This document shows, piece by piece, positions 9,000 through 54,032 of a stretch of 64,000 nt of DNA. This stretch comes from Hyalangium minutum (GTDB lineage: Bacteria > Myxococcota > Myxococcia > Myxococcales > Myxococcaceae), in contig NZ_JMCB01000003.1 in assembly GCF_000737315.1 (NCBI RefSeq), positions 620,001 to 684,000 of the forward strand. The letters run 5' to 3'. Numbering within the stretch: the stretch's first letter is position 1; each line of letters begins with the position of its first letter. Under the pieces are notes generated by a model, which saw only the letters and a program-made list of their open reading frames with translations, was not told the origin of the DNA and did no database searches. A program made the translations under genes and the position numbers.

Positions 9000-10877
9000 C
9001 TAAGCGTACCAGCGCGGCTCGGGGTCCAGGACGGGCGTGGCGATGTCCTGGTAGGAGATCTGCGGCCCCTCCACCGAGTGCTTCGCGATCGTCGTCTTCG
9101 CCCACTTCTCGTGGCGCTTCTTCCACAGGTCCATCCAGCTGGGATCCTCGCGGGGATCCTTGCTCTTGGGCTCGGGCAGCGAGAAGTCGGGCTTGTAGTG
9201 GGCGCCGCGGCTCTCGTCGCGCAGCAGCGCGCTGGTGGCGATCACCTCGCCCAGCTCCAGCATGTTCCACAGCTGGTTGGTGAAGGACAGCGAGCGGTTG
9301 GCCACGTTGCCCGTGTCCAGCACGTTGCAGTTCTTCCACCGCTCCTTCATCTCGCGGATCTTCTCGACCGACTTCTTCAGCCGGTCGTTGTAGCGGACGA
9401 CGGTGCAGTTCTCCGTCATCAGCTCGCCCAGCTCCTTGGAGATCTGGTACGGGTTCTCCGCGCCCGCCATCTTCTTGAGGGTGGCGAACCGGTCCTCCCA
9501 GTACTTCTTCGCGTCGGTGAAGTACTTGGCGCTCTGGGCCTCGGCGCTCTTGGCGTTGTTCTTCGCGTAGGCCGCCATGGCCGGGCCGCCGATCATGCCC
9601 GAGTAGATGCACGACAGCAGCGAGTTGGCCCCCAGGCGGTTGGCGCCGTGGAAGGCGTAGTCCGCCTCGCCCGCCGCGTACAGGCCCGGGATGTCCGTGG
9701 ACTGGTTGCGCGGGCTGCCGTCGGCCGGCGTCTGGGTGCGCGGATCAGCCTCGAAGTTCACGTACAGGCCGCCCATCGAGTAGTGCATGCCCGGGAAGAT
9801 GACCATCGGCGTGTGGCGCGGATCATCCCCCACGAACTTCTCGTAGATCTCCATCACGCCCTTGATCTTCGCGTCGAGCGTAGAAGCGGGAATGTGCGTC
9901 ACGTCCAGGTACACGCCGTCCTTGCCGTTGATGCCCATCCCCAGATCGCGGCAGACCATGAAGATCTCGCGAGTGGCCACATCACGCGGCACGAGGTTCT
10001 TGTACTTGGGGTACTTCTCCTCGAGGAAATAGAAGCGCTCGCTCTCGGGGATGTCGCGCGGGTTGCGCGTGTCGCCCTTCTTCCGAGGCACCCACACGCG
10101 GCCGCCCTCGCCACGCACGGACTCGCTCATCAGGCGCAGCTTGTCCTCGCCCGGAATCGACGTCGGGTGCACCTGGATGAACTCGCCGTTGGCGTAGCTG
10201 GCGCCCTCCATGTAGGCGCGGCCTGCCGCGGTGCCGGTGTTGATGATGGAGTTGGTGGAGCGCCCGAAGACGATGCCCGGACCTCCCGTGGCCAGGCACA
10301 CTGCCTCGGCCGGGAAGGTGCGAATCTCCATGGTGCGCAAGTCCAGCGCCACGCTGCCGATGCAGCGGCCAGACTCGTCCTTCACCGTGCCGAGCCACTC
10401 CCAAAACTCGTACTTGGTGACCTTGCCCTCGGACTCGTAGCGACGAACCTGCTCGTCCAGCGCGTAGAGCAGCTGCTGGCCGGTGGTGGCGCCCGCGAAG
10501 GCTGTCCGGTGGTGGAGCGTGCCGCCGAAGCGGCGGAAGTCCAGCAGGCCCTCGGAGGTGCGGTTGAACGTCACCCCCATGCGGTCCAGCATGTAGATGA
10601 TGCCCGGGGCCGCGTAGCACATGCCCTTCACGGACGTCTGCTCCGCGAGGAAGTCGCCGCCGCGCAGCGTGTCCTTCACGTGGATGTCCGGATGGTCACC
10701 CTCGCCCTTGGTGTTCACCGCGCCGTTGATGCCGCCCTGGGCGCAGACCGAGTGCGAGCGCTTCACCGGCACGATGGAGAGCACATCAACCTGGTGTCCG
10801 GCCTCGGCCAGCTTGATGGTCGTCATCAACCCTGCGAGACCGCCACCCACCACCGTGAACCGCGCTGCTGCTGCCAT
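9000..10877 (-). CDS. sdhA: Succinate dehydrogenase flavoprotein subunit (Bacillus-like type)
   Basis: VVGGGLAG, RSHSVCAQGGINGA (FAD-His), IQVHPT, SESVRGEG, HYSMGG, HGANRLGANSL, ESRGAH. Confidence 0.95.
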   Translation of the reverse strand: MAAAARFTVVGGGLAGLMTTIKLAEAGHQVDVLSIVPVKRSHSVCAQGGINGAVNTKGEGDHPDIHVKDTLRGGDFLAEQTSVKGMCYAAPGIIYMLDRMGVTFNRTSEGLLDFRRFGGTLHHRTAFAGATTGQQLLYALDEQVRRYESEGKVTKYEFWEWLGTVKDESGRCIGSVALDLRTMEIRTFPAEAVCLATGGPGIVFGRSTNSIINTGTAAGRAYMEGASYANGEFIQVHPTSIPGEDKLRLMSESVRGEGGRVWVPRKKGDTRNPRDIPESERFYFLEEKYPKYKNLVPRDVATREIFMVCRDLGMGINGKDGVYLDVTHIPASTLDAKIKGVMEIYEKFVGDDPRHTPMVIFPGMHYSMGGLYVNFEADPRTQTPADGSPRNQSTDIPGLYAAGEADYAFHGANRLGANSLLSCIYSGMIGGPAMAAYAKNNAKSAEAQSAKYFTDAKKYWEDRFATLKKMAGAENPYQISKELGELMTENCTVVRYNDRLKKSVEKIREMKERWKNCNVLDTGNVANRSLSFTNQLWNMLELGEVIATSALLRDESRGAHYKPDFSLPEPKSKDPREDPSWMDLWKKRHEKWAKTTIAKHSVEGPQISYQDIATPVLDPEPRWYA

Positions 10878-11028
10878 GAATCGTCTCCTTCGCTACATAG
10901 GAGGCTAGATAACTTGGCGGAATTCCGCCGCAAATCGTGAGGCGCGTCCAATAAGTGGGCGCCATTCACGGCATAAGGCCCGCCCTACCCAAGGAGTTCC
11001 CAGGCAGGACGGGCCCCGAACTGCCAGA

Positions 11029-13293
<2,265 letters not shown>

Positions 13294-29318: not shown

Positions 29319-31136
29319 TCAGCCCGCCTTGGCCTCGGAGTGGGCGCCCTCGGCGTAGAGGGACTCGATGAGGGCGGCGTGCTTCTTTTCCACGGCGCTG
29401 CGGCGGACTTTGAGCGTGGGCGTCATCTCGCCTCCATCGATGGAGAAGTCCTCCGGGAGGATGGCGATGCGCTTGATCGTCTCGAAGCGGGCCAGCTGCG
29501 GGTTCACCTCGCGCTCGATGGCCTGCTCCAGGTACTGGCGCAGGCGCGGATCCCGGACCAGTGCACCCGGCTCCTCCGGCCAGCTCTGGGCCTGGGCCAC
29601 GGCCTTCAGCTTCTCCGCGTCCACCGTCAGCAGCGCCACGAGGTAGTTGCGCCGCTCGCCGATGACGACCGCCTGGCTCACCGGAGCCACGCCCTTGAGC
29701 AGCTGCTCGATGTTGGCGGGCGCCGTCTTCTTGCCGCCCGAGGTGACGATGATCTCCTTCTTGCGGCCGGTGATGTGCGCGAAGCCCTCGCCGTCCAGCA
29801 CCGCCACGTCTCCCGTGTGGAGCCACCCGTCCTGCAGCAACTCCGCGGTGGCGGCGGCCTCCTTGAAGTAGCCCATGCACGTGTTGCCACCGCGCAGGAG
29901 CAGCTCCCCGTCCTCCGCGATGCGGATCTCCATGCCCACCAGGGGCCGGCCCACCGAGCCCAGCCGCGTGGCCTCGTGCGTGTTGAGCGTCCCGGGGCCC
30001 GTCACCTCGGACATGCCCCACACCTCGCGGATGATGATGTCGATGGAGGCGAAGAAGTCCAACACAGTCCGGGCAATGGGCGCCGCACCCACGGAGAAGA
30101 ACTCCACCTGATCGAAGCCGATGCGCTCATGCAACGGCGCGAACACCAGCTTGCGGGCCAGCTGGTACTGGGCCTCCAGCGGCAGGGGCACCTTCTCGTG
30201 GCGCAGTGCCAGCGTGTGGTACTGCGTGGCCACGCCGCGCGCCCAGGCCAGCACCTTCTGCCGCAGCGGCGGCTGCGCGCGGAACCCCTCCTCCGCCTTC
30301 GCCTTGAACTTCTCCCACACGCGGGGCACGCCGAAGAAGAAGGTGGGCCGCACCTCCTTCAGGTTCTGCGGCACCGAGTCGATCGAGTCCGCGAAGAACA
30401 CCTGCGCGCCCAGCATCAGCGGGCCGTAGATGGAGAGCACCTGCTCGGCGATGTGCGAGAGCGGCAGGTACGACAGCATCCGCTTGGACTCCTTGCCGAA
30501 CCGTGCCGCCTGGATGAGCTTCTCCGTCGTCCACACGAGGTTGTGGTGGCTCAGCATCACCCCCTTGGGGTTTCCCGTCGTCCCCGAGGTGTAGATGAGG
30601 GTCGCCAGCCCGTTCTTCTCCAGTGCGTTGACGCGCTCCCAGTAGGGGCCCTCGTCCGCGCCCGTGCCCTTCTCCAGCACGTCCGTGTACCGCAGCACGC
30701 CCGGGGGCAGCTCGTCCGGCGCGTCCATGACGATGATGTGGCGCAGCTTGGGCAGCCGCTCGCGCACCTTCAGCGCGGTGGCCAGGTACTTGGCGTTCTC
30801 CACCAGGAAGAACTCCGCCTCGCTGTGGCCGAGGATGTACTCGATCTGCTCCGCGCTGCTCGTGGTGTAGATGCCCAGCGGCACGCCCCCGAGCGCCATG
30901 GCGGCCAGATCCGACACCAGCCACTCCTCGCGGTTGAAGCTCTGGATGGCCAGCACGCCCTTGGCCTGGAACCCCAGGGCGTGCAGGCCCAGAGCGAAGC
31001 GGGTGACGCGCTGGGCGTACTCGCGCCAGGAGGTGGGGACGTACGTCTTGCCTCGCCGCTTCCAGAGCGCCGGGCGATGCTCGTACCGCGTGGCCTGCTG
31101 GTGGAGCACATGAACCAACGTCGTGGGCTGTTCCAT
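29319..31136 (-). CDS. fadD: Long-chain fatty acid-CoA ligase (AMP-dependent synthetase)
   Basis: IYTSGTTGNPKG, YLPLSHIAE, VPRVWEK, WGMSE, WLHTGD, GRKKEIIVTSGGKK, TPTLKVRR. Confidence 0.9.
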   Translation of the reverse strand: MEQPTTLVHVLHQQATRYEHRPALWKRRGKTYVPTSWREYAQRVTRFALGLHALGFQAKGVLAIQSFNREEWLVSDLAAMALGGVPLGIYTTSSAEQIEYILGHSEAEFFLVENAKYLATALKVRERLPKLRHIIVMDAPDELPPGVLRYTDVLEKGTGADEGPYWERVNALEKNGLATLIYTSGTTGNPKGVMLSHHNLVWTTEKLIQAARFGKESKRMLSYLPLSHIAEQVLSIYGPLMLGAQVFFADSIDSVPQNLKEVRPTFFFGVPRVWEKFKAKAEEGFRAQPPLRQKVLAWARGVATQYHTLALRHEKVPLPLEAQYQLARKLVFAPLHERIGFDQVEFFSVGAAPIARTVLDFFASIDIIIREVWGMSEVTGPGTLNTHEATRLGSVGRPLVGMEIRIAEDGELLLRGGNTCMGYFKEAAATAELLQDGWLHTGDVAVLDGEGFAHITGRKKEIIVTSGGKKTAPANIEQLLKGVAPVSQAVVIGERRNYLVALLTVDAEKLKAVAQAQSWPEEPGALVRDPRLRQYLEQAIEREVNPQLARFETIKRIAILPEDFSIDGGEMTPTLKVRRSAVEKKHAALIESLYAEGAHSEAKAG

Positions 31137-31259: not shown

Positions 31260-31628
31260 ATGAGCATCGACTTCACCTGTCAGAAGTGCGAGGCGAGCTT
31301 CGAGCTGGACGCGCAGGATCTCATCGAGGGGACCGAGAAGCTGGTCTGCCCCCACTGCGAAGCGAAAGCCCCCGCCAACATCTCCGAAGACTTCGTCGCG
31401 GCGCTCACGGAGATGCGCGCCCAGATCGCCGTGCTGGGCAAGAAGTTCGCGGTCAGCATGACGCTCGAGTCCGAGGATCTGGAGGATGAGCTCGAGGAGG
31501 AGGACGAGGAGGATGACGACGAGGAGTCCGAGGACGACGACGAGCTCGACTTCGACGAGGACGAAGACGAAGACGAGGATGCCGACGACGACGAGGACTA
31601 CGACGACGAGGATGAGGACGAGCGCTGA
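31260..31628 (+). CDS. Zinc-ribbon protein with long Asp/Glu-rich tail (122 aa)
   Basis: CQKC...CPHC, followed by a ~50 aa tract that is almost entirely D/E; ATG 31260. Confidence 0.85.
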   Translation: MSIDFTCQKCEASFELDAQDLIEGTEKLVCPHCEAKAPANISEDFVAALTEMRAQIAVLGKKFAVSMTLESEDLEDELEEEDEEDDDEESEDDDELDFDEDEDEDEDADDDEDYDDEDEDER

Positions 31629-31741: not shown

Positions 31742-32440
31742 GTGAAAACACCCAATCGCGCCAGCCTCTTTCTCGCCCCGCTCTCCGCCGTCGTGCTGGC
31801 GCTGGTGGGTCTGCTTTTCCTTCCCACCCTCTCGGCGCCGCCAGCGTTCGCCGCATCGCCCTCGGGGCCCAAGCCGGAGCCCTGCGTCACGGAAGCGGGC
31901 GCGGACCCGGCAGCTTGCAAGGAACTCGTCGAGCTCGTGGTCCGCGACGTCGTCCCGCTGGACGAGGCTCAGACCCACGCCGTGGTGCTCACCACCCAGG
32001 ACGGGACCATTGTCCTCCCGGTCTTCGTGGACGAGGCGGCGGCCGTGGCCATCGCCTTCCGCCTGGCTCACCTCGAGCCGCCTCAGCCGCTCGCCCAGGA
32101 TCTGCTGGATGACGTGGTGTCCAAGTTGGGCGCCTCCGTCACCGAGGTCCGCATCGATGACCTGCGCGGCGACATCTACACCGGCCGCGTCTTCATCCAG
32201 CAGGGCAAGAAGAACCTGGAGCTGGACGCCCGCCCGGCGGACTCCATCGCCATGGCCCTGGACGGCAACGCCCGCATCCGCGTGACGCGCAAGGTCCTGA
32301 CGCAGGCGGGCATCAGCCGCGAGGACATCCAGGAGCTGCACGAGCAGTCCCCCGGCGTGGGCGGCAGCGGGAGCTCCGAGGAGCCCGTCGAGGAGCTGCC
32401 GGTGGCGCCCCAGGTCAGGCACAAGGAGATCAGCCTCTAG
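31742..32440 (+). CDS. DUF151/bifunctional nuclease (BFN) domain protein with N-terminal signal peptide
   Basis: VVL...VLPVFVDEAAAVAIA...QPLAQDL...VTEVRIDDLRGDIYTG...LDARPADSIAMAL is the BFN pattern; preceded by hydrophobic LFLAPLSAVVLALVGLLFL...AFA. Confidence 0.85.
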   Translation: MKTPNRASLFLAPLSAVVLALVGLLFLPTLSAPPAFAASPSGPKPEPCVTEAGADPAACKELVELVVRDVVPLDEAQTHAVVLTTQDGTIVLPVFVDEAAAVAIAFRLAHLEPPQPLAQDLLDDVVSKLGASVTEVRIDDLRGDIYTGRVFIQQGKKNLELDARPADSIAMALDGNARIRVTRKVLTQAGISREDIQELHEQSPGVGGSGSSEEPVEELPVAPQVRHKEISL

Positions 32441-32512: not shown

Positions 32513-32640
32513 CTCGAGACAAGCTGAGGGTGCAAAGACACGAGGGCCGGGTACGGCTCCGGCGCCCGCGCGAGGTGAACATTCGCCTTCCGCGATCTCA
32601 GCTGTCAAGGGGGCTACCCCCCGCCTAGGATGCCTTGCCC

Positions 32641-34044
32641 ATGCGCAAGGCGAAAATCATCTGCACCCTGGGCCCCGCTTCAAACTCCCCGGAAGTCATC
32701 GAGGGCCTCATCCGCGCCGGTATGAACGTGGCGCGCCTCAACTTCTCCCACGGGACGCAGGACGATCACCGCCGCCGGGTGAACACCATCCGCAAGGTGT
32801 CCCGGAAACTGGGAATTCCCGTGGCCATCCTGCAGGACGTGCAGGGCCCCAAGATCCGGCTCGGTAAGTTCGAGGGCGGCCAGCTCGTGGTGAAGGAAGG
32901 CCAAACCGTGACGGTGACCACGCGCGCCGTCCTGGGAGCGGGGACGGTCATCCCCACGCCGGTGCGCTCGCTGCCGAAGGACGTGGAGCGCGGGCACGTC
33001 ATCCTCCTGGACGACGGCCGGGTGCGACTCCGAGTGCTGCGGGTCGCGGGCCGGGATGTCACCGCCAAGGTGGAGGTGGGGGGACTCCTGAAGGACCACA
33101 AGGGCCTCAACCTGCCGGGCGCGGCGATCTCGGTGCCCACCATTACGGAGAAGGACGCGGTGGATCTGGCGTTCGGCCAGGAGCTCGGCGTGGACTACGT
33201 GGCACTGTCCTTCGTGCGCTCGGCGGACGACATCCGCAAGGCGCGCGAGCACGTGTCCAAGCTGAAGACGCCCTTGATTGCGAAGATCGAGAAGCCCCAG
33301 GCGGTGGAGGACCTGGAGGCCATCGCCGCGGTGGCGGATGGGGTGATGATCGCCCGCGGAGACCTGGGCGTGGAGATGCCGCTGGAGCAGCTGCCGGGCA
33401 TCCAGAAGCGCGCGGTGGCCGAGGTGAACCGGATGGGCGGTCTGGTCATCGTGGCCACGGAGATGCTGGAGAGCATGGTGTCCAACTCCCGGCCTACGCG
33501 CGCCGAGGTGTCCGACGTGGCCAACGCCATCCTGGACGGAGCGGACGCGGTGATGCTCTCGGGCGAGACGGCGGCGGGCCGCTATCCCATCGACGCAGCG
33601 GCCACCATGGCGAGGATTGTCGAAGAAACGGAGCGAGGAGTCGTCTCAGGCGGCCTGCGCCCCTCGCTGGTCGAGCGCAAGGATGACCTGTCCACCGGCG
33701 TGGCGGCGGCGGCGGTGGCGGCGGCCGAGCAACTGGGCATCGACACGATCGTCACCTATACGGAGCGGGGCCACACCGCGCGCCTGATCTCCGAGTTCCG
33801 GCCTCGGGCGCAGATCATCGGCCTGACGCCCAACGCGGACACGGTGAACCGGATGGCGCTGTACTGGGGCGTGAAGGGGCTCCAGGTGGGCCGGCTGCAG
33901 AGCACGGACGCGATGCTCAAGCAGGTCCGCCGGCTGTGCCGTGACCAAGGGCTGTGCAAGGTGGGCTCGCCCGTGGTCATCGTGGCGGGCGTGCCGCTCA
34001 ACGAGCCGGGCAGCACCAACATGATGTCCGTGCACCGCATCTGA
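32641..34044 (+). CDS. pyk: Pyruvate kinase
   Basis: KIICTLGP, ARLNFSHG, DVQGPKIR, AKIEK, MIARGDLGVE, ATEMLESM, DAVMLSGETA. Confidence 0.97.
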   Translation: MRKAKIICTLGPASNSPEVIEGLIRAGMNVARLNFSHGTQDDHRRRVNTIRKVSRKLGIPVAILQDVQGPKIRLGKFEGGQLVVKEGQTVTVTTRAVLGAGTVIPTPVRSLPKDVERGHVILLDDGRVRLRVLRVAGRDVTAKVEVGGLLKDHKGLNLPGAAISVPTITEKDAVDLAFGQELGVDYVALSFVRSADDIRKAREHVSKLKTPLIAKIEKPQAVEDLEAIAAVADGVMIARGDLGVEMPLEQLPGIQKRAVAEVNRMGGLVIVATEMLESMVSNSRPTRAEVSDVANAILDGADAVMLSGETAAGRYPIDAAATMARIVEETERGVVSGGLRPSLVERKDDLSTGVAAAAVAAAEQLGIDTIVTYTERGHTARLISEFRPRAQIIGLTPNADTVNRMALYWGVKGLQVGRLQSTDAMLKQVRRLCRDQGLCKVGSPVVIVAGVPLNEPGSTNMMSVHRI

Positions 34045-34167
34045 AGCCCCCGCTCCAAGCGCTCGCCCGCGGGCCCTTGAAGCGCGCTCTCACTCCCAGT
34101 AAAACGCAACTTCCAGGTTAAAGAGGCGATACTTGGAAGGCTGATCCATGGCCTGGGAGGAGCCTTC

Positions 34168-35217
34168 TTGAGAACGCCGGGAATCCTGGTGGGGATCGCC
34201 CTCGTGGGCCTGGTGGCCTGGCGCGCGCTTGCGCCTCGGGCCGCCCCGGCTGCAGAGGACACGGCTCCCATCGTGGCTCCGGGAGTGTCGGTGCCGCCTC
34301 CGGACGCGCCCTGGCACGCCCGTTCGGACCCTGGCGCGCCCCAGAGTGGTTCAGCTCCCGAGGCGTCGCAGCTCAAGGCCCAGTTCCTGATGGCGAAGGC
34401 CCGGCAGACGCTGGGACAGGCCTACGAGCGCTCTGCCTCGCATGGAGACTTTGCCCTCGCTCCAGGCCGCATCCTGAAGAGCCTCCTGGAGCGGCGCTGT
34501 GGGCTCGTACAGCGCCATGCCCAGGCGCTTGCCGTGGACGCGGCGGGCCTGTGCCGGGAACTGCTGTTCGCGGCCGTGAAGGAGCGGCTGGCCCTTTCCT
34601 CGAATGTCTCTGAGGCCCGGTTCTGGGAGCTCCTGACGCAGGTCGACGAGGCCTATGAGCGGCTCGTGGTGGCGGATCCCTCCACGGCCCGCGACGAGGC
34701 CTTCCGCGCTGCCTTCGAGCGCTTCCGCGAGGCACGGCGCGGCATCGTTGGAGCGGACCTGGATCGGCGCCTGTTCGGGCTCGCGGACGAGGTGCTTCGT
34801 CTGCCCTTCCAGGTGGAAGACCTGCTCCACGATCCCAAGACCTCCGCCGAGCAAAAGCTCGCCGCCTACGAAGAGACGCTCCAGCGCATCGAGCGCGAGT
34901 CCGGCGTGCGGCTGGCGTCCGTCGTGGAGCCCCTGGAACTGGCGAAGCACGCGCTGCGGCTCCAGGAGGCTGCAGGCCCGCTCGGCCCCGAGCAGCGGCA
35001 GGCGGTGCTGGCGCGCTACGCGGGGCCTGAGACCGCCGAGCGCTACCTGGCGAATCAACAGGAGCAACAAGACCGGAGCGAGCGGCTGCACGCCTTCAAC
35101 CAGGAGCGCGATGCCCTGCTGGAGCAACTGGCTCGCGCGGGGCTGGGCCCGGAGCAGCGCCGCCAGCGGATGGCCGAGATCGACCAGCAGCTCTTCGAGA
35201 AGTACCGCCTGCAATAA
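34168..35217 (+). CDS. Membrane-anchored helical protein resembling lipase-specific foldase (Lif/LipB)
   Basis: TTG start after GGAGGAG; N-terminal TM anchor, P/A-rich linker, all-helical body. The C-terminus RSERLHAFNQERDALL...GLGPEQRRQRMAEIDQQLF recalls the foldase C-terminal pattern. Recognised by eye only. Confidence 0.6.
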   Translation: MRTPGILVGIALVGLVAWRALAPRAAPAAEDTAPIVAPGVSVPPPDAPWHARSDPGAPQSGSAPEASQLKAQFLMAKARQTLGQAYERSASHGDFALAPGRILKSLLERRCGLVQRHAQALAVDAAGLCRELLFAAVKERLALSSNVSEARFWELLTQVDEAYERLVVADPSTARDEAFRAAFERFREARRGIVGADLDRRLFGLADEVLRLPFQVEDLLHDPKTSAEQKLAAYEETLQRIERESGVRLASVVEPLELAKHALRLQEAAGPLGPEQRQAVLARYAGPETAERYLANQQEQQDRSERLHAFNQERDALLEQLARAGLGPEQRRQRMAEIDQQLFEKYRLQ

Positions 35218-35247
35218 CCCGCATCGCCGTCACGAAGGAGTTCGCCC

Positions 35248-36420
35248 ATGGAGTCCCACAAGATCGAGTGGCGCAGGGGTGTACTGCCCGCTGCGCTCAC
35301 GCTGCTGCTCGCCGGCCCGGCCTGGGCCGAGGGCACGCCCGCGTTCGACGCCTACTACTCGAGCCATCCCAAGGAGTGGTTCGACGCCGCCAGCGAGGTG
35401 GACTACTTCAATCCCTCGATCACACGCTCCTGGCAGCTCAACGAGACGTGCAGCGACACCGGGTACTTCTCGGTGGCCTCGTACAACATCTTCCACAACG
35501 TCCCATTCGTCACCGACTTCGGAGACGAGATGGAGCAGAGCCTCGGCAAGGTGACGAAGTGCGCCGACGTCGTCCTCTACCAGGAGGCCTGGGATTACGA
35601 CGACATCATCGAGGACGGCCCCAAGGCGGATCTGACCGCGCGCGGCTACAAGATGCTGACGCCGGCCAACTACTACTGCGACGACTCGGGCGAGGGTGCG
35701 ATCGAGAACGACTGCAGCGGGCTGGTGATGTTCTACAAGACGGGCACGACGCTCGTGAAGGAACTGACGCTCCAGCCCTTCACCACGGTGAACGGCGTGG
35801 ACGTGCACAAGGAGAAAGGCATCTGGGGCGCGATCTTCGCCAAGGAGGGCCGCTACTACTACGTCTTCAACACCCACTTCACGTACGGCAACAACAGCCA
35901 CCTGGACGGGGACTCCACCTCCGACGCCTCGCGCATCTCCAACATGAAGCAGTCGCTGGCCTTCATCCGCGATCGCGTGAATGCCAACCGAGCCAGCTAC
36001 CCGCCCGCGCTCATCCTCTTCGGGGGCGACTTCAACGCGGACTTCACGAGCGCCCTCAGCTACTCCAAGGGCTACCAGCTGCTTCTCCAGGCCTCCGCAC
36101 AGAGCAGCTTCTTCGAGCCGTATGAATACGCCACCGGCGGTGCGGCCCTGGGCGGATATGAGACCGCGGGCTTCCAGTCCAACTGGCCCGGCTCCACGGC
36201 CGATACGGGCAACAACGGCATGGCTTCGGGCGCCAAGGGGGACTTTGACACGCTGATGGTCGGCAAGGCCGCCGCGTTCGGCTCCTGCTCGCCAGCCTCC
36301 ATCTCGTACAGCGGCTGGGCGCCGGGCTGGAAGTCGATCGACACGAGCGTGCGGAAGTGGCCGTCGTATACCCACTCGGACCATTACGGCCGCTGGATCC
36401 GGGTGAAGCCCGGCTGCTGA
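35248..36420 (+). CDS. Secreted EEP-superfamily hydrolase, sphingomyelinase C/phospholipase C-like
   Basis: Signal peptide (AWA/EG); SYNI, VVLYQEAW, EKGIW, VFNTHF, GGDFNAD, FDTL, SDHYG reproduce the DNase I-like catalytic set. Confidence 0.82.
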   Translation: MESHKIEWRRGVLPAALTLLLAGPAWAEGTPAFDAYYSSHPKEWFDAASEVDYFNPSITRSWQLNETCSDTGYFSVASYNIFHNVPFVTDFGDEMEQSLGKVTKCADVVLYQEAWDYDDIIEDGPKADLTARGYKMLTPANYYCDDSGEGAIENDCSGLVMFYKTGTTLVKELTLQPFTTVNGVDVHKEKGIWGAIFAKEGRYYYVFNTHFTYGNNSHLDGDSTSDASRISNMKQSLAFIRDRVNANRASYPPALILFGGDFNADFTSALSYSKGYQLLLQASAQSSFFEPYEYATGGAALGGYETAGFQSNWPGSTADTGNNGMASGAKGDFDTLMVGKAAAFGSCSPASISYSGWAPGWKSIDTSVRKWPSYTHSDHYGRWIRVKPGC

Positions 36421-36430
36421 GCCCCCACGG

Positions 36431-37861
36431 ATGGCGCTGCCGAGGCTCGGAGGGCTGGGACGGAGCTGCCTGTGGGCAGGGGGCGGCGCCTTGCTGGTGG
36501 GCGCGTCAGCGCACCTGATCCTCGTCTTCCCGGCCAACGTGCTGGGCCTCGTGGGCGGCTTTGCCTGCTACTTCCGAGCGCTCGGCCACAGCGAAACGCC
36601 ACGCGCGGGGCTGCTCACCGGCTCCGTGTTCGGCCTGCTCCTGGCAGCCAGCAGCCTCTATTGGCTTACCGATGTGCTCTATGTGCTGACGCTCGAAGAG
36701 CGCATCGTTGGGGCCATCGTGGTGGGTGGGTTCCTGGTGCTGATCGCGCTGCCTTACGGGCTCTGGGGGCTCGGAGCGGTGCTCATGAGGCGCCGCGTGC
36801 CTCGGCGCTGGATGTTCCTCCTCGCACCAGGGCTGCTGCTGGCACAAGCGCTCGTCCATGACGTGTGGCTCGGCTTTCCCTGGCTGCACCACGGCTACTG
36901 GCTGGCCTTCGGGCCTCTGGGAAACTGGCTGGCCCTGCTGGGAGCGTGGGGCGTGGGACTGCTCCTGCTCCACCTCGCCGCGTGCGTGGGGCTCTGGAAC
37001 CAGGCCCCGAGCGCCCTTTCGCATGCACTGGCCACGGGTGTGGTGCTCTGCCTTGCCCCCCTGTTCCCCGTCAGCCCTCCCCCCGGCCCGGCTTCCCGGA
37101 GGGTCCAAGCCGCCATCATCAGCATCGATCCTCCCGAGGTGAAGGACAGCCCCCAGGACAACCTCGAGCTGCTCTCGCGCTACGTGATGGCCACGCAGCA
37201 GCTCCGGGCGGATTGGACCTTCTGGCCCGAGTCCGTCATCCGTGACGGCGAAGCCACCCTGGCCCCGCTCAGCGCGGCCTTGGGTCTGCCAGGGGGACGC
37301 ATCTTCGCGGGGGCACTGCTCGCGGCCCCCTCAGGGCGCTACAACGCCCTCGTCGAACTCCCGGGAGGCAGGCCCCTCTACTACAAGCAGAAGCTCGTCC
37401 CATTCTCGGAGTACCTGCCCGGCGAGCCCTTCCGCCGGCTGTTCCGAGTGCTCGGCGTCAACACCCTCAAGACCGACGTGACCGCGTGGCCCCAGCCGCA
37501 GCCCGCGGTGGAAGCCGACGGCGTGAGCCTGCACCCCCTGCTCTGCTACGAGGCCGCCTTCACCGAACTCATCCAGCCCGGCTCCCAGCCGATGGTGTTG
37601 CTCAACGCCGGCAACGAGAGCTGGTTCCGGAGCGCGCTCATGCACCGCATGACCTTAGCGATGGCCGTGGCCCGCTCCCGCGAGTACGGCGTCCCGCTGG
37701 TGCGCTCCGTGGTGGGCGGCTCCAGCGGGACCTTCGACCCTGCCTCGGAACCTGTCTGGCAGGAGGGCGAGGTCCGTGAAGGCACCCTCACCCACCCCGC
37801 CCCGCTCCTCCCCCGGCCCGCAGCGACGCCGTACAGCTACTGGCGCCGCCTGTTCCCCTGA
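36431..37861 (+). CDS. lnt: Apolipoprotein N-acyltransferase-like protein (membrane domain + CN-hydrolase)
   Basis: ~7 TM N-half with GFPW; catalytic triad motifs WPES (E), YYKQKLVPFSEY (K), LCYE (C); GNESWF; RSREYGVPLVR. Confidence 0.85.
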   Translation: MALPRLGGLGRSCLWAGGGALLVGASAHLILVFPANVLGLVGGFACYFRALGHSETPRAGLLTGSVFGLLLAASSLYWLTDVLYVLTLEERIVGAIVVGGFLVLIALPYGLWGLGAVLMRRRVPRRWMFLLAPGLLLAQALVHDVWLGFPWLHHGYWLAFGPLGNWLALLGAWGVGLLLLHLAACVGLWNQAPSALSHALATGVVLCLAPLFPVSPPPGPASRRVQAAIISIDPPEVKDSPQDNLELLSRYVMATQQLRADWTFWPESVIRDGEATLAPLSAALGLPGGRIFAGALLAAPSGRYNALVELPGGRPLYYKQKLVPFSEYLPGEPFRRLFRVLGVNTLKTDVTAWPQPQPAVEADGVSLHPLLCYEAAFTELIQPGSQPMVLLNAGNESWFRSALMHRMTLAMAVARSREYGVPLVRSVVGGSSGTFDPASEPVWQEGEVREGTLTHPAPLLPRPAATPYSYWRRLFP

Positions 37862-37967
37862 GCGCGCAGCGAACCGGTCTACTTGTCAGACAGGTTGGCC
37901 GCGCGCCCAGCCAGCCAGGGCCCCATCACGATGAAGGGTGCTCCCGTACAGGTGAAGCCTCACACGC

Positions 37968-38735
37968 TCAGGCTGGCGTGACACCCGCACGGCGAATCCG
38001 CTCGATGTACTCCGCCGTGGCCCCAGAGAGCTTGCCCACCACGGCCAGAAAGCGCGCTCGCCGCTTCGCGAGCTCCGGCTCCGGTTCACGAACCGCGAGG
38101 GACTCGTCCCACAGCAGGTCGCGCAGCTGCCACACGAACTGGTTGAACGGGAAGTGGTGAACCGCCTGCACGGGCTCGATGAACTCCGCGGAGATGGGCG
38201 TCGTCAGCGTGTCCCAGGCGGAGCTGGACTGCTGCTTCCAGATGCCGGACACGTGCACGAGCACCATGCGGCCATCCACGAGCAGATACACCCGGCGCTC
38301 CACCAACACGCCCATGTCCTTCGGCTGGGAGTCCTGCACGCCGTACCGGAAGTAGTCATGCGCGAGCGGATAGGCGTGCTCCTTCATCCACTCCGCCTCC
38401 CGCAGGCGCGCCGGGTAGCTCCCGAGCCCCGCCTCATACGCCTGCAGCAGTTCCTCGGGCATCCCCTGAACGCCTCGGAGATCCTCGCGGATGGTGCGCA
38501 GCGGAAGCCGATCCAGCTCCGGCAGCGCGAGCTGAATGAGTAGCCCCAGCAGCGTGCCTTGCACTTCCTGGAGCCCCTCGGCCAGGGGGCTCATCGTGGC
38601 CCAGAATTCCTCCCGGAGCCGCAGGTGCTCCGGATCCGGCTCGGGTGGCGCGAAGGCGGGCAGCTCCTTCGGCGTCTGCCGGCGGTCAGACAAGTCGATG
38701 ACGGTCGGCGCCTCGTCCTTGTCTTTGTCTTTCAC
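37968..38735 (-). CDS. Hypothetical protein
   Basis: 255 aa ORF; GTG start overlaps the upstream stop; coding-like codon usage; no recognisable motif. Confidence 0.7.
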   Translation of the reverse strand: MKDKDKDEAPTVIDLSDRRQTPKELPAFAPPEPDPEHLRLREEFWATMSPLAEGLQEVQGTLLGLLIQLALPELDRLPLRTIREDLRGVQGMPEELLQAYEAGLGSYPARLREAEWMKEHAYPLAHDYFRYGVQDSQPKDMGVLVERRVYLLVDGRMVLVHVSGIWKQQSSSAWDTLTTPISAEFIEPVQAVHHFPFNQFVWQLRDLLWDESLAVREPEPELAKRRARFLAVVGKLSGATAEYIERIRRAGVTPA

Positions 38736-39400
38736 AGGGTCTTGTTCTGGAAGTCGTACAGCTTCTCGACGGCGACCTGCCGGTAGCGCTCCACCTTGAG
38801 CGCGCGCATGGCGCAGTCCCAGACCAGCTCCTTGGCGGGCCGATCCGGCTCCTTCTTCTTGCGCCGTTTCACTTCGGCCTTGATGGCCTTCACCGCCACG
38901 CGCGGGTGGTAGCAGAACGCCGCCGAGAACAGCAGGTGCCCGCCGAACGGGATGAGCCGCGCCTCGATGACATCCCCCGTCTCCAGACCGGCGATGTTGC
39001 GGCGCTCGGTGACGTCAAAGTCCTTGCCGGAGAACAGCTCGCGCAGGCGGATGACGCCCTTGCCCAGCTTGCGCACCTCGAACAGCCCGTGCACCGTCTC
39101 CGTGAAGCTGCGGAAGGCGTTGCCCTCCTCGGGGGCCGCGCTCTGCAGCCGCTGCTCGTACAGCTCGGTGGCCGGCGTCTTCCCCGTGAGAGGCGAGACA
39201 CGATCGTACAGGTAGTAGTCCAGGAACGAGGCCATCCGGAGCTCGAAGATCTTGTCGTCCTCGAACACCTCGCCCGTGAGGCGGAAGTACTCGGCCTTGG
39301 CCTCCAAGAGGTCCGCCTTGCGCGGCTCCTGGCTCCCGAAGGCGATGAGCTCGTCCAGGTACGGCTGATACGACAGAGGTGAAGCGGAAGGGGCGTCCAT
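38732..39400 (-). CDS. Conserved hypothetical protein
   Basis: 222 aa; FLDYYLYD...GLFEV...LRELFSGKDFDV...GDVIEARL resembles a domain often seen with SEC-C proteins, but there is no SEC-C motif here. Confidence 0.75.
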   Translation of the reverse strand: MDAPSASPLSYQPYLDELIAFGSQEPRKADLLEAKAEYFRLTGEVFEDDKIFELRMASFLDYYLYDRVSPLTGKTPATELYEQRLQSAAPEEGNAFRSFTETVHGLFEVRKLGKGVIRLRELFSGKDFDVTERRNIAGLETGDVIEARLIPFGGHLLFSAAFCYHPRVAVKAIKAEVKRRKKKEPDRPAKELVWDCAMRALKVERYRQVAVEKLYDFQNKTL

Positions 39401-53933: not shown

Positions 53934-53958
53934 CGGCCGCGCTGCGGGAGGGAGAGAG

Positions 53959-54032
53959 TGACCCCGACAGGAATCGAACCTGTGACCTGTGGTTTAGGAA
54001 ACCACCGCTCTATCCAACTGAGCTACGGGGCC
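53959..54032 (-). tRNA. tRNA-Arg (anticodon CCU); CCA end not encoded
   Basis: Minus strand GGCCCCG TA GCTC AGTTGGATA GAGC G GTGGT TT-CCT-AA ACCAC AGGTC ACAGG TTCGATT CCTGT CGGGGTC A gives a complete cloverleaf; followed by CTC, not CCA. Confidence 0.95.

Follow-up and report, generated by a model that had tools for sequence, protein, structure and literature searches.

Three consecutive genes in a 64-kb stretch of the Hyalangium minutum genome (the window), here called A, B, and C, encode a predicted relative of the lipase chaperone Lif, a sphingomyelinase (SMase)-like phosphodiesterase, and a paralogue of the apolipoprotein N-acyltransferase Lnt, respectively (Table 1; residue numbers below are those of the window proteins). 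The three genes are co-oriented on the plus strand, with gaps of 30 bp between A and B and 10 bp between B and C, and the coordinates confirm that they lie between pyk and a convergent pair of genes, as an earlier note on this DNA (the original prediction) had stated. Public records label the three products "lipase secretion chaperone," "endonuclease," and "apolipoprotein N-acyltransferase," and these labels are misleading. Lif is the textbook example of a private steric chaperone and is treated as specific to lipases of families I.1 and I.2. Based on the gene linkage and the family relationships described here, the Lif chaperone family probably serves another client besides lipases, one not yet described.

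The linkage between A and B was traced by a pattern scan, with each GTDB species represented by one genome, that gave 23 loci and by contig look-ups of database homologues of B and C, which added the rest; after deduplication, 28 distinct loci besides the window remained, and their A-like genes were found by tblastn and hidden Markov model (HMM) searches. At all 28 loci, an A-like gene directly adjoins a B-like gene. The loci belong to Myxococcota (Hyalangium, Archangium, Pyxidicoccus, Stigmatella, a Myxococcus sp., and Polyangia and other metagenome-assembled genomes [MAGs]), to Leptospirales (two MAGs), and to Oceanospirillales (two Bacterioplanes, three Thalassolituus, and one Saccharospirillaceae MAG). 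The gene order is A-B in Myxococcota and Leptospirales, with a gap of ~20 to 34 bp or a 4-bp overlap at most loci, and B-A in the gammaproteobacterial loci, with overlaps of 10 to 13 bp or gaps of 0 to 13 bp. Flanking genes vary among genera, with pyk adjacent in the window and in its closest relative but nowhere else. The arrangement on whose recurrence the original prediction had staked itself is thus found in other genomes and is not the product of chance, and no other evidence for a joint function of A and B is as strong as the survival of their adjacency through an inverted gene order over three phyla.

Neighbor-joining trees of A and B contain the same major clades and sub-clades, and the pairwise-identity matrices of the two proteins are correlated (r = 0.93), a value that would also arise from plain vertical co-inheritance. 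Within the myxobacteria, mean identity is 50% for A, the fastest evolving of the genes, and 71% for B, the slowest. No family I.1/I.2-type lipase gene is located beside A-B at any of the 28 loci, and the pentapeptide of such lipases (GHS[HQ]GG) occurs in no open reading frame (ORF) of at least 120 amino acids (aa) in the window and, among the loci, at L016 alone (see below), which bears out the earlier statement that a classical family I lipase is missing here. A tblastn search of a plasmid collection with B as the query found no copy.

Family relationships of A and B

The product of gene A scores 50.8 bits on the Pfam model PF03280 (Lipase_chap), whose gathering score is 25.7, the match covering residues 165 to 345 of A and positions 14 to 189 of 192 in the model. 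PF03280 is present in all 50 A homologues but one, a fragment; the remote A-like proteins of Leptospirales and gammaproteobacteria are under the cut-off or have no match. Searched singly against the PDB with phmmer, the A sequence returned nothing, and a profile was needed. A profile built from 24 A-clade members matched one PDB sequence, the Lif chaperone of Burkholderia glumae (2ES4_D, E = 5.6e-4), so that both the Pfam score and the sole PDB relative of the profile uphold the original description of A as Lif-like.

The AlphaFold2 (AF2) model of A (mean predicted local distance difference test score [pLDDT], 83) is all-helical, with a transmembrane helix at residues ~5 to 20, a low-confidence or disordered Pro/Ala-rich linker at residues 21 to 62, and a helical body at residues 64 to 345 with pLDDT of >90. 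This plan of transmembrane helix, linker, and helical body is common to all A-like proteins. When the model was searched against the PDB with Foldseek, the top and sole high-probability match was again the B. glumae chaperone (2ES4_E; probability, 0.99; 23% identity over 249 columns). The clade is tiny: an exhaustive HMMER search of 1.84 billion representative proteins placed 20 proteins in it at E values of ≤1e-3 and reached canonical Lifs carrying FDYFL (P0154 and P0155) at an E value of ~1e-4.

A therefore shares with Lif/LipH/LipB (LipH-LipA of Pseudomonas aeruginosa; 2ES4 of B. glumae) its PF03280 family and its architecture (membrane anchor at the N terminus, linker of variable sequence, and extended body of helices), and the genes of both are tightly coupled, in either order, to a gene for a Sec-exported hydrolase. 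They differ in that this neighbor encodes an EEP-fold phosphodiesterase in the case of A and a family I.1/I.2 alpha/beta-hydrolase lipase in the case of Lif; in addition, A lacks the conserved foldase motif, has a clade-specific Cys pair, and belongs to a small and remote clade. Judging from these sequence and model comparisons, we regard A as a true but divergent and atypical Lif relative.

Residues ~1 to 27 of protein B form a Sec-type signal peptide, ending in ...LLLAGPAWA before EG, and signal peptides occur throughout its family. In an alignment of 22 sequences (39 to 94% identity), the EEP catalytic residues N80, E113, H210, D261, N263, D378, and H379 are invariant, and so are the six Cys residues (positions 68, 105, 144, 156, 347, and 390), which fits a disulfide-bonded exported enzyme. 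NCBIfam has no family for B and gives A and C just the labels discussed here, and a single-sequence phmmer search of the PDB gave a spurious match to MLH1 alone (E of ~0.3); here, too, a profile was needed. The B profile, searched against all PDB sequences, matched seven distinct SMase C/beta-hemolysin sequences (E = 6.7e-5 to 4e-3), with nothing else under an E value of 0.1 and with no nuclease, TDP2, or inositol phosphatase among its matches. The AF2 model of B (pLDDT, 77.6; predicted template modeling [TM] score [pTM], 0.82) gave the same picture in Foldseek, where ranks 1 to 13 against the PDB are all bacterial SMase C or beta-toxin structures (E = 6e-14 to 1e-12; TM scores on the target of 0.64 to 0.69). 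Compared with the SMases of Bacillus cereus (2DDT) and Streptomyces (7CNE), SmcL of Listeria (1ZWX), and beta-toxin of S. aureus (3I41), B has TM scores on the target of 0.64 to 0.71 at 15 to 18% identity.

These profile and structure matches agree with the original assignment of B to an SMase-like enzyme and not a lipase. B has the same fold and the same set of catalytic residues as bacterial SMase C and is also secreted, but its chain has ~90 more residues, a conserved extension at the N terminus (residues ~30 to 75), and six invariant Cys residues. We consider the name "sphingomyelinase-like" justified for B at the family level, as far as profile and fold comparisons can assign it.

No dedicated chaperone is reported as a requirement of the known SMases, and a literature search found none for them. 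A parallel of a kind exists in PlcH-PlcR of P. aeruginosa, a hemolytic phospholipase C/sphingomyelinase and an operon-encoded accessory protein needed for its secretion. It is an analogy only: PlcH is Tat-exported and is not an EEP enzyme, PlcR is not Lif-like, and the families are unrelated.

Some members of the B family have additional features. At two loci (L027, 7001 to 8956; L028, 6767 to 8722), B is fused to ~260 C-terminal residues of FG-GAP/VCBS repeats, giving a protein of 651 aa; the A-like gene still stands in front, C is absent, and the fusion suggests a surface- or matrix-bound variant. At locus L016 (6001 to 7170; P0033 and P0034), a copy of B carries a lipobox (LTLAC or LTFAC) in place of the ordinary cleavage site, and some B-family members are thus probably lipoproteins, judging by this signal. 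The idea that C acylates B was considered and rejected, as the lipobox is found in the L016 B alone and that locus lacks C, so that the two features are uncorrelated.

Protein C and its distribution

Protein C passes the TIGR00546 (lnt) model narrowly (141.2 bits; cut-off, 132.9) and the PF20154 (LNT_N) model with 46.5 bits (cut-off, 27.1). Its score against PF00795 (CN_hydrolase), 14.4 bits, is under the gathering score of 23.2; homologues at loci L019 (33.8 bits) and L020 (26.7 bits) pass, and the one at L030 has a precomputed match. When C was aligned with the Lnt structures of E. coli (5N6H) and P. aeruginosa (5N6M), the Glu-Lys-Cys triad was found to be kept as E267, K319, and C372, and E. 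coli residues E343, P346, Y388, E389, and W415 correspond to E327, P330, Y373, E374, and W398. The triad and the equivalents of E343, Y388, E389, and W415 are conserved across the C clade, Leptospirales included, the exceptions being a change of Y373 to Phe in 2 of 18 members and, at L020, a change to Arg of the Tyr that follows E327.

The position of E. coli W237 is occupied in C by D239 (in KDSP) and across the clade by Asp or Gly in nearly all members and by Ala at L020 (Leptospirales), never by Trp; the canonical-type protein P0087 has LKW there. In E. coli, W237 belongs to a mobile loop at the substrate portal and is reported to be essential only for the second step of the reaction, acyl transfer to the apolipoprotein (PMC6971011). 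As the residues for the acyl-enzyme are kept and W237 is lost, C can probably acylate itself but treats its acceptor differently. C also has an 8-residue deletion before its catalytic Lys. In summary, C has the same membrane and periplasmic nitrilase-like domains, triad, and GFPW motif as Lnt but differs from canonical members in its identity of ~26% or less, its CN_hydrolase score, and its W237 position, and the earlier view of C as a catalytically intact, Lnt-like enzyme is supported at the level of sequence, with the qualification that it is an atypical one. A 732-aa homologue of C (P0066) was examined as a possible B-C fusion and rejected; it is C plus either an extension of coiled-coil type or a downstream gene merged into the same call. 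The extension consists of ~250 C-terminal residues that are Gln/Glu/Arg-rich and coiled-coil-like and follow an additional hydrophobic segment.

C is located directly downstream of B at 14 of the 27 loci with downstream sequence, including both Leptospirales loci. It is absent from several Archangium loci, a Polyangia MAG, the loci with FG-GAP-fused B, and every gammaproteobacterial locus. These absences are scattered among C-containing relatives in the tree of B, a pattern indicating that the ancestor of the Myxococcota/Leptospirales branch had A-B-C and that C was lost repeatedly. Of the three-gene operon that had originally been proposed as a unit, the A-B core is therefore conserved, and C is a part that was lost repeatedly and is not needed for A-B function.

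An alternative is that C is a housekeeping Lnt that stands beside A-B by chance or shared ancestry, with no functional tie; C does pass the TIGR00546 equivalog cut-off with its triad kept, and A-B dispenses with it at half of the loci. The distribution of the C clade makes this improbable. Identities among C homologues run from 94% to 51% and then drop to 26%, delimiting a narrow clade, and its members, where context was available, are found only beside A-B: homologues of at least 51% identity on long contigs share them with A or B matches, and two that did not match were checked and also adjoin B. The next match is a 26%-identical canonical gammaproteobacterial Lnt, located in the usual ybeY-corC-lnt-leuS context. 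In Leptospirales, a second phylum, C again stands beside A-B, and no homologue of at least 51% identity was found in myxobacteria whose A-B lacks C, even though their A and B are in the database (e.g., Archangium lansingense). In addition, the equivalog cut-off is barely passed, PF00795 stays under its gathering score, and the whole clade lacks an equivalent of W237, which E. coli Lnt needs to acylate apolipoproteins. We therefore take C to be a specialized, divergent Lnt paralogue, on the sequence criteria given, that is tied to the A-B module as an accessory and not as part of its core; genomes that carry C presumably have a second, housekeeping lnt.

Genomic setting of the locus

The coordinates of the three genes and of their immediate neighbors are given in Table 1.

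Table 1. Genes and signals at the A-B-C locus of Hyalangium minutum (window coordinates)
Feature	Position	Strand	Description
pyk (pyruvate kinase)	32635-34044	+	PF00224 and PF02887; upstream of A, spacer of 123 bp
Shine-Dalgarno-like GGGAGGAG	34155-34162	+	Read from the sequence; 5 nt before the TTG start of A
Gene A	34168-35217	+	ORF, 349 aa
Gene B	35248-36420	+	ORF, 390 aa
Gene C	36431-37861	+	ORF, 476 aa
255-aa gene	37968-38735	-	Convergent with C; no match in local Pfam/NCBIfam
222-aa gene	38732-39400	-	4-bp overlap with the 255-aa gene; no match in local Pfam/NCBIfam

The public gene call of A (P0089, 342 aa) begins seven codons downstream, at 34189; the position of GGGAGGAG favors the start at 34168 over the database start. 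Gene B has a ribosome-binding site, GAAGGAG, 7 nt 5' of its start, and the start of C 10 nt past the stop of B suggests coupled translation. A scan of positions 33900 to 38100 found no promoter or terminator, such a scan being uninformative for myxobacterial sequence of 69% GC, and an Rfam search of the whole window returned a tRNA alone and no riboswitch upstream of A. This tRNA-Arg(CCT), at 53958 to 54032 on the minus strand, is the sole Rfam or ARAGORN match in the window. None of A, B, and C has a match in PADLOC, so they are not a known defense system.

The two minus-strand genes downstream of C stand at the tail of a pyrB-pyrC-carA operon. On a related contig (L032), which lacks the 255-aa gene, the homologue of the 222-aa gene carries the tag PF25948 (DUF7986); the 255-aa gene is thus a local addition. 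The nearest relatives of the window are Hyalangium-type myxobacteria; its B and pyk share 87% and 91% identity, respectively, with those of a Hyalangium sp. MAG. The GC content of the window is ~69%; it falls to 0.64 to 0.65 over gene B (positions 35000 to 36500) from ~0.69 on both sides, a dip that may reflect the composition of B, which is rich in Asn, Tyr, Phe, Asp, and Lys, or a foreign origin.

In Stigmatella sp. strain ncwal1 (L029), the A-B-C cluster is flanked by two glutathione-S-transferase genes, and a DDE transposase gene (PF01609; 10974 to 12371) is located ~1.4 kb downstream, which fits the variable genomic contexts of the cluster. Upstream of pyk in the window, a 122-aa ORF (31260 to 31628, plus strand) has a zinc-ribbon-like N terminus (CxxC...CxxC) and a very acidic tail, with 44 Asp or Glu among its last 62 residues. 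It lies between a gene for a fadD-like acyl-CoA ligase (29319 to 31136, minus strand) and a gene at 31742 to 32440 that encodes a bifunctional-nuclease domain (PF02577) with a signal peptide.

Proposed function and alternative explanations

We hypothesize, with a probability of roughly 60%, that the locus encodes a cell-envelope module in which A serves as steric chaperone to the non-lipase client B, with C as an accessory enzyme whose acceptor is altered. B would be exported unfolded via Sec, form up to three disulfides, and act as a metal-dependent EEP phosphodiesterase. A, tethered to the inner membrane with its helical body facing the periplasm, would embrace newly exported B and scaffold its folding and disulfide-dependent maturation, probably keeping it off the producer's own membrane, and B would then be released for secretion or for action in the envelope. 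Its reaction would be cleavage of the phosphodiester between a lipid backbone (ceramide or lyso- or diacyl-glycerol) and the head group of sphingo-, lyso-, or glycero-phospholipids. C, where present, would form a Cys-thioester acyl-enzyme from a phospholipid donor and would probably N-acylate an amine acceptor other than the standard apolipoprotein, linked to the substrate or product of B; the loss of the W237 equivalent makes such a different amine acceptor probable. A more far-reaching version, in which the three genes make up a new periplasmic lipid pathway and C N-acylates a nonprotein amine (a sphingoid base, a lyso- or amino-lipid, or a phosphoethanolamine head group), seems doubtful to us, and the sphingoid or amino-lipid acceptor named in the original prediction is entirely speculative.

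The original prediction's proposal that a Lif-like chaperone serves a client other than a lipase is strongly backed by the adjacency at 28 of 28 loci in three phyla and two gene orders. The suggested relevance to predation did not find support, since the module is also present in marine Oceanospirillales (Thalassolituus, Bacterioplanes, and a Saccharospirillaceae MAG) and in Leptospirales MAGs; the searches made did not recover it among Myxococcus xanthus or Corallococcus proteins.

Several observations count against the chaperone-client interpretation and bring other explanations into play. C is missing from about half of the loci, which counts against C as part of the module. The Foldseek match of A to 2ES4_E has an E value of 0.026 and TM scores of just 0.25 to 0.29; we read these low scores as the result of comparing a free model with a client-bound, extended scaffold, a reading that is not proof. 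Every foldase family is reported to conserve, in mini-domain 1, the motif RXXFDY(F/C)L(S/T)A, which is said to be required for activity (PMC7046727). A lacks this strict motif and has a degenerate GDFALAP at a comparable position, within R88-SASHG-D94-F95-A-L97-A-P99, so that D-aromatic-x-L is all that is common to both. R88, D94, F95, L97, and P99 are invariant in the A clade, as is the Cys pair C111/C129, but the GDFALAP region itself varies beyond it: the Leptospirales and gammaproteobacterial A-like proteins have DGFSIAP, SQWLVKP, or SEWQADP there and retain just the aromatic residue and the proline.

A missing activation motif is what would be expected if A were an inhibitor or immunity-type partner, tethered to the membrane and binding B stoichiometrically so that a membrane-damaging B stays inactive in the producer's periplasm until export. 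The same strict adjacency and translational coupling of A and B would follow from such a role. In the 2ES4 complex, moreover, the lipase is held closed and bound very tightly. A dissociation constant of 29 nM is reported for Lif of P. aeruginosa (PMC7046727). Tight binding of a closed lipase means that the family already has the capacity both to bind and to inhibit. We nevertheless consider this account unlikely as the whole explanation, though it is among the stronger of the alternatives, because A is homologous to proven foldases and because immunity proteins against periplasm-acting toxins usually pair with toxins delivered into other cells, whereas B has an ordinary Sec signal peptide. The inhibitor and foldase roles of A are not mutually exclusive.

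A second group of contrary observations concerns B. Its match to PF03372 (Exo_endo_phos) is weak, at 16 bits against a gathering score of 24.5; the Bacterioplanes homologue reaches 24.2 bits, and a few homologues have a precomputed match. Public records (NCBI and JGI) call the family "endonuclease" or "EEP family metal-dependent hydrolase," and TDP2, a nucleic-acid/protein phosphodiesterase, follows close behind the SMases in Foldseek, the margin being small. B might thus be a secreted nuclease or another non-lipid phosphodiesterase, with A as its dedicated chaperone and the likeness to SMases due to the shared fold; in keeping with this, CNOT6L and PDE12 as well as TDP2 are among the Foldseek matches (E = 1e-12 to 1e-10), and identity to SMases is just 15 to 18%. 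On balance, we judge such an activity unlikely, about as much so as a purely inhibitory A: below an E value of 0.01, the B profile finds SMase C/beta-hemolysin alone despite the many EEP nucleases and phosphatases in the PDB, the top 13 Foldseek matches are all SMases, the frequent neighbor C is a lipid acyltransferase, and "endonuclease" is a generic, fold-level label.

The last contrary observation comes from L016, the second A-B copy of Archangium lansingense and the only one of the loci with a lipase gene within ~6 to 8 kb. There, a gene matching Pfam Lipase (class 2) and encoding GHSQGG lies 3.3 kb downstream (~10520 to 12150, minus strand), beyond a kinase gene and a second, uncharacterized gene; its product is secreted, with three ~100-aa Cys-rich repeats and a C-terminal class-2 lipase domain. 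Together with the fact that all characterized Lifs have lipase clients, this could be taken to mean that A serves a family I lipase encoded elsewhere and stands beside B by coincidence. We find this very hard to reconcile with the adjacency of A and B at all 28 loci in three phyla and both orders, where the stop codon of one gene often overlaps the start codon of the next, and with the congruence of the A and B trees; the L016 gene, besides, is a class 2 lipase gene on the opposite strand that is separated from A-B by two unrelated genes, and the other loci have no lipase gene in this range.

We therefore favor the interpretation of A as a steric chaperone for B. A full-text literature search found no paper linking Lif or lipase chaperones with sphingomyelinases, EEP enzymes, Lnt, or myxobacteria, and a recent survey predicted Lif dependence starting from lipase genes only (PMC12096544). 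What is probably new here, as far as can be judged from the genomes, is a putative Lif-family steric chaperone with a non-lipase client, together with an Lnt paralogue whose acceptor is probably altered. If this is true, the "embracing" scaffold of Lif can be retooled for an unrelated client fold, and has been across three phyla, and the A-B pair would offer a second, independent system for the study of steric chaperones. In practical terms, expression of the SMase-like B family should include the neighboring A gene. C offers a specific case in which an Lnt-type enzyme may use a nonlipoprotein acceptor, which can be tested directly in envelope lipid biology, and if the lipid-pathway version were true, Lnt chemistry would be used on lipids and not on lipoproteins.

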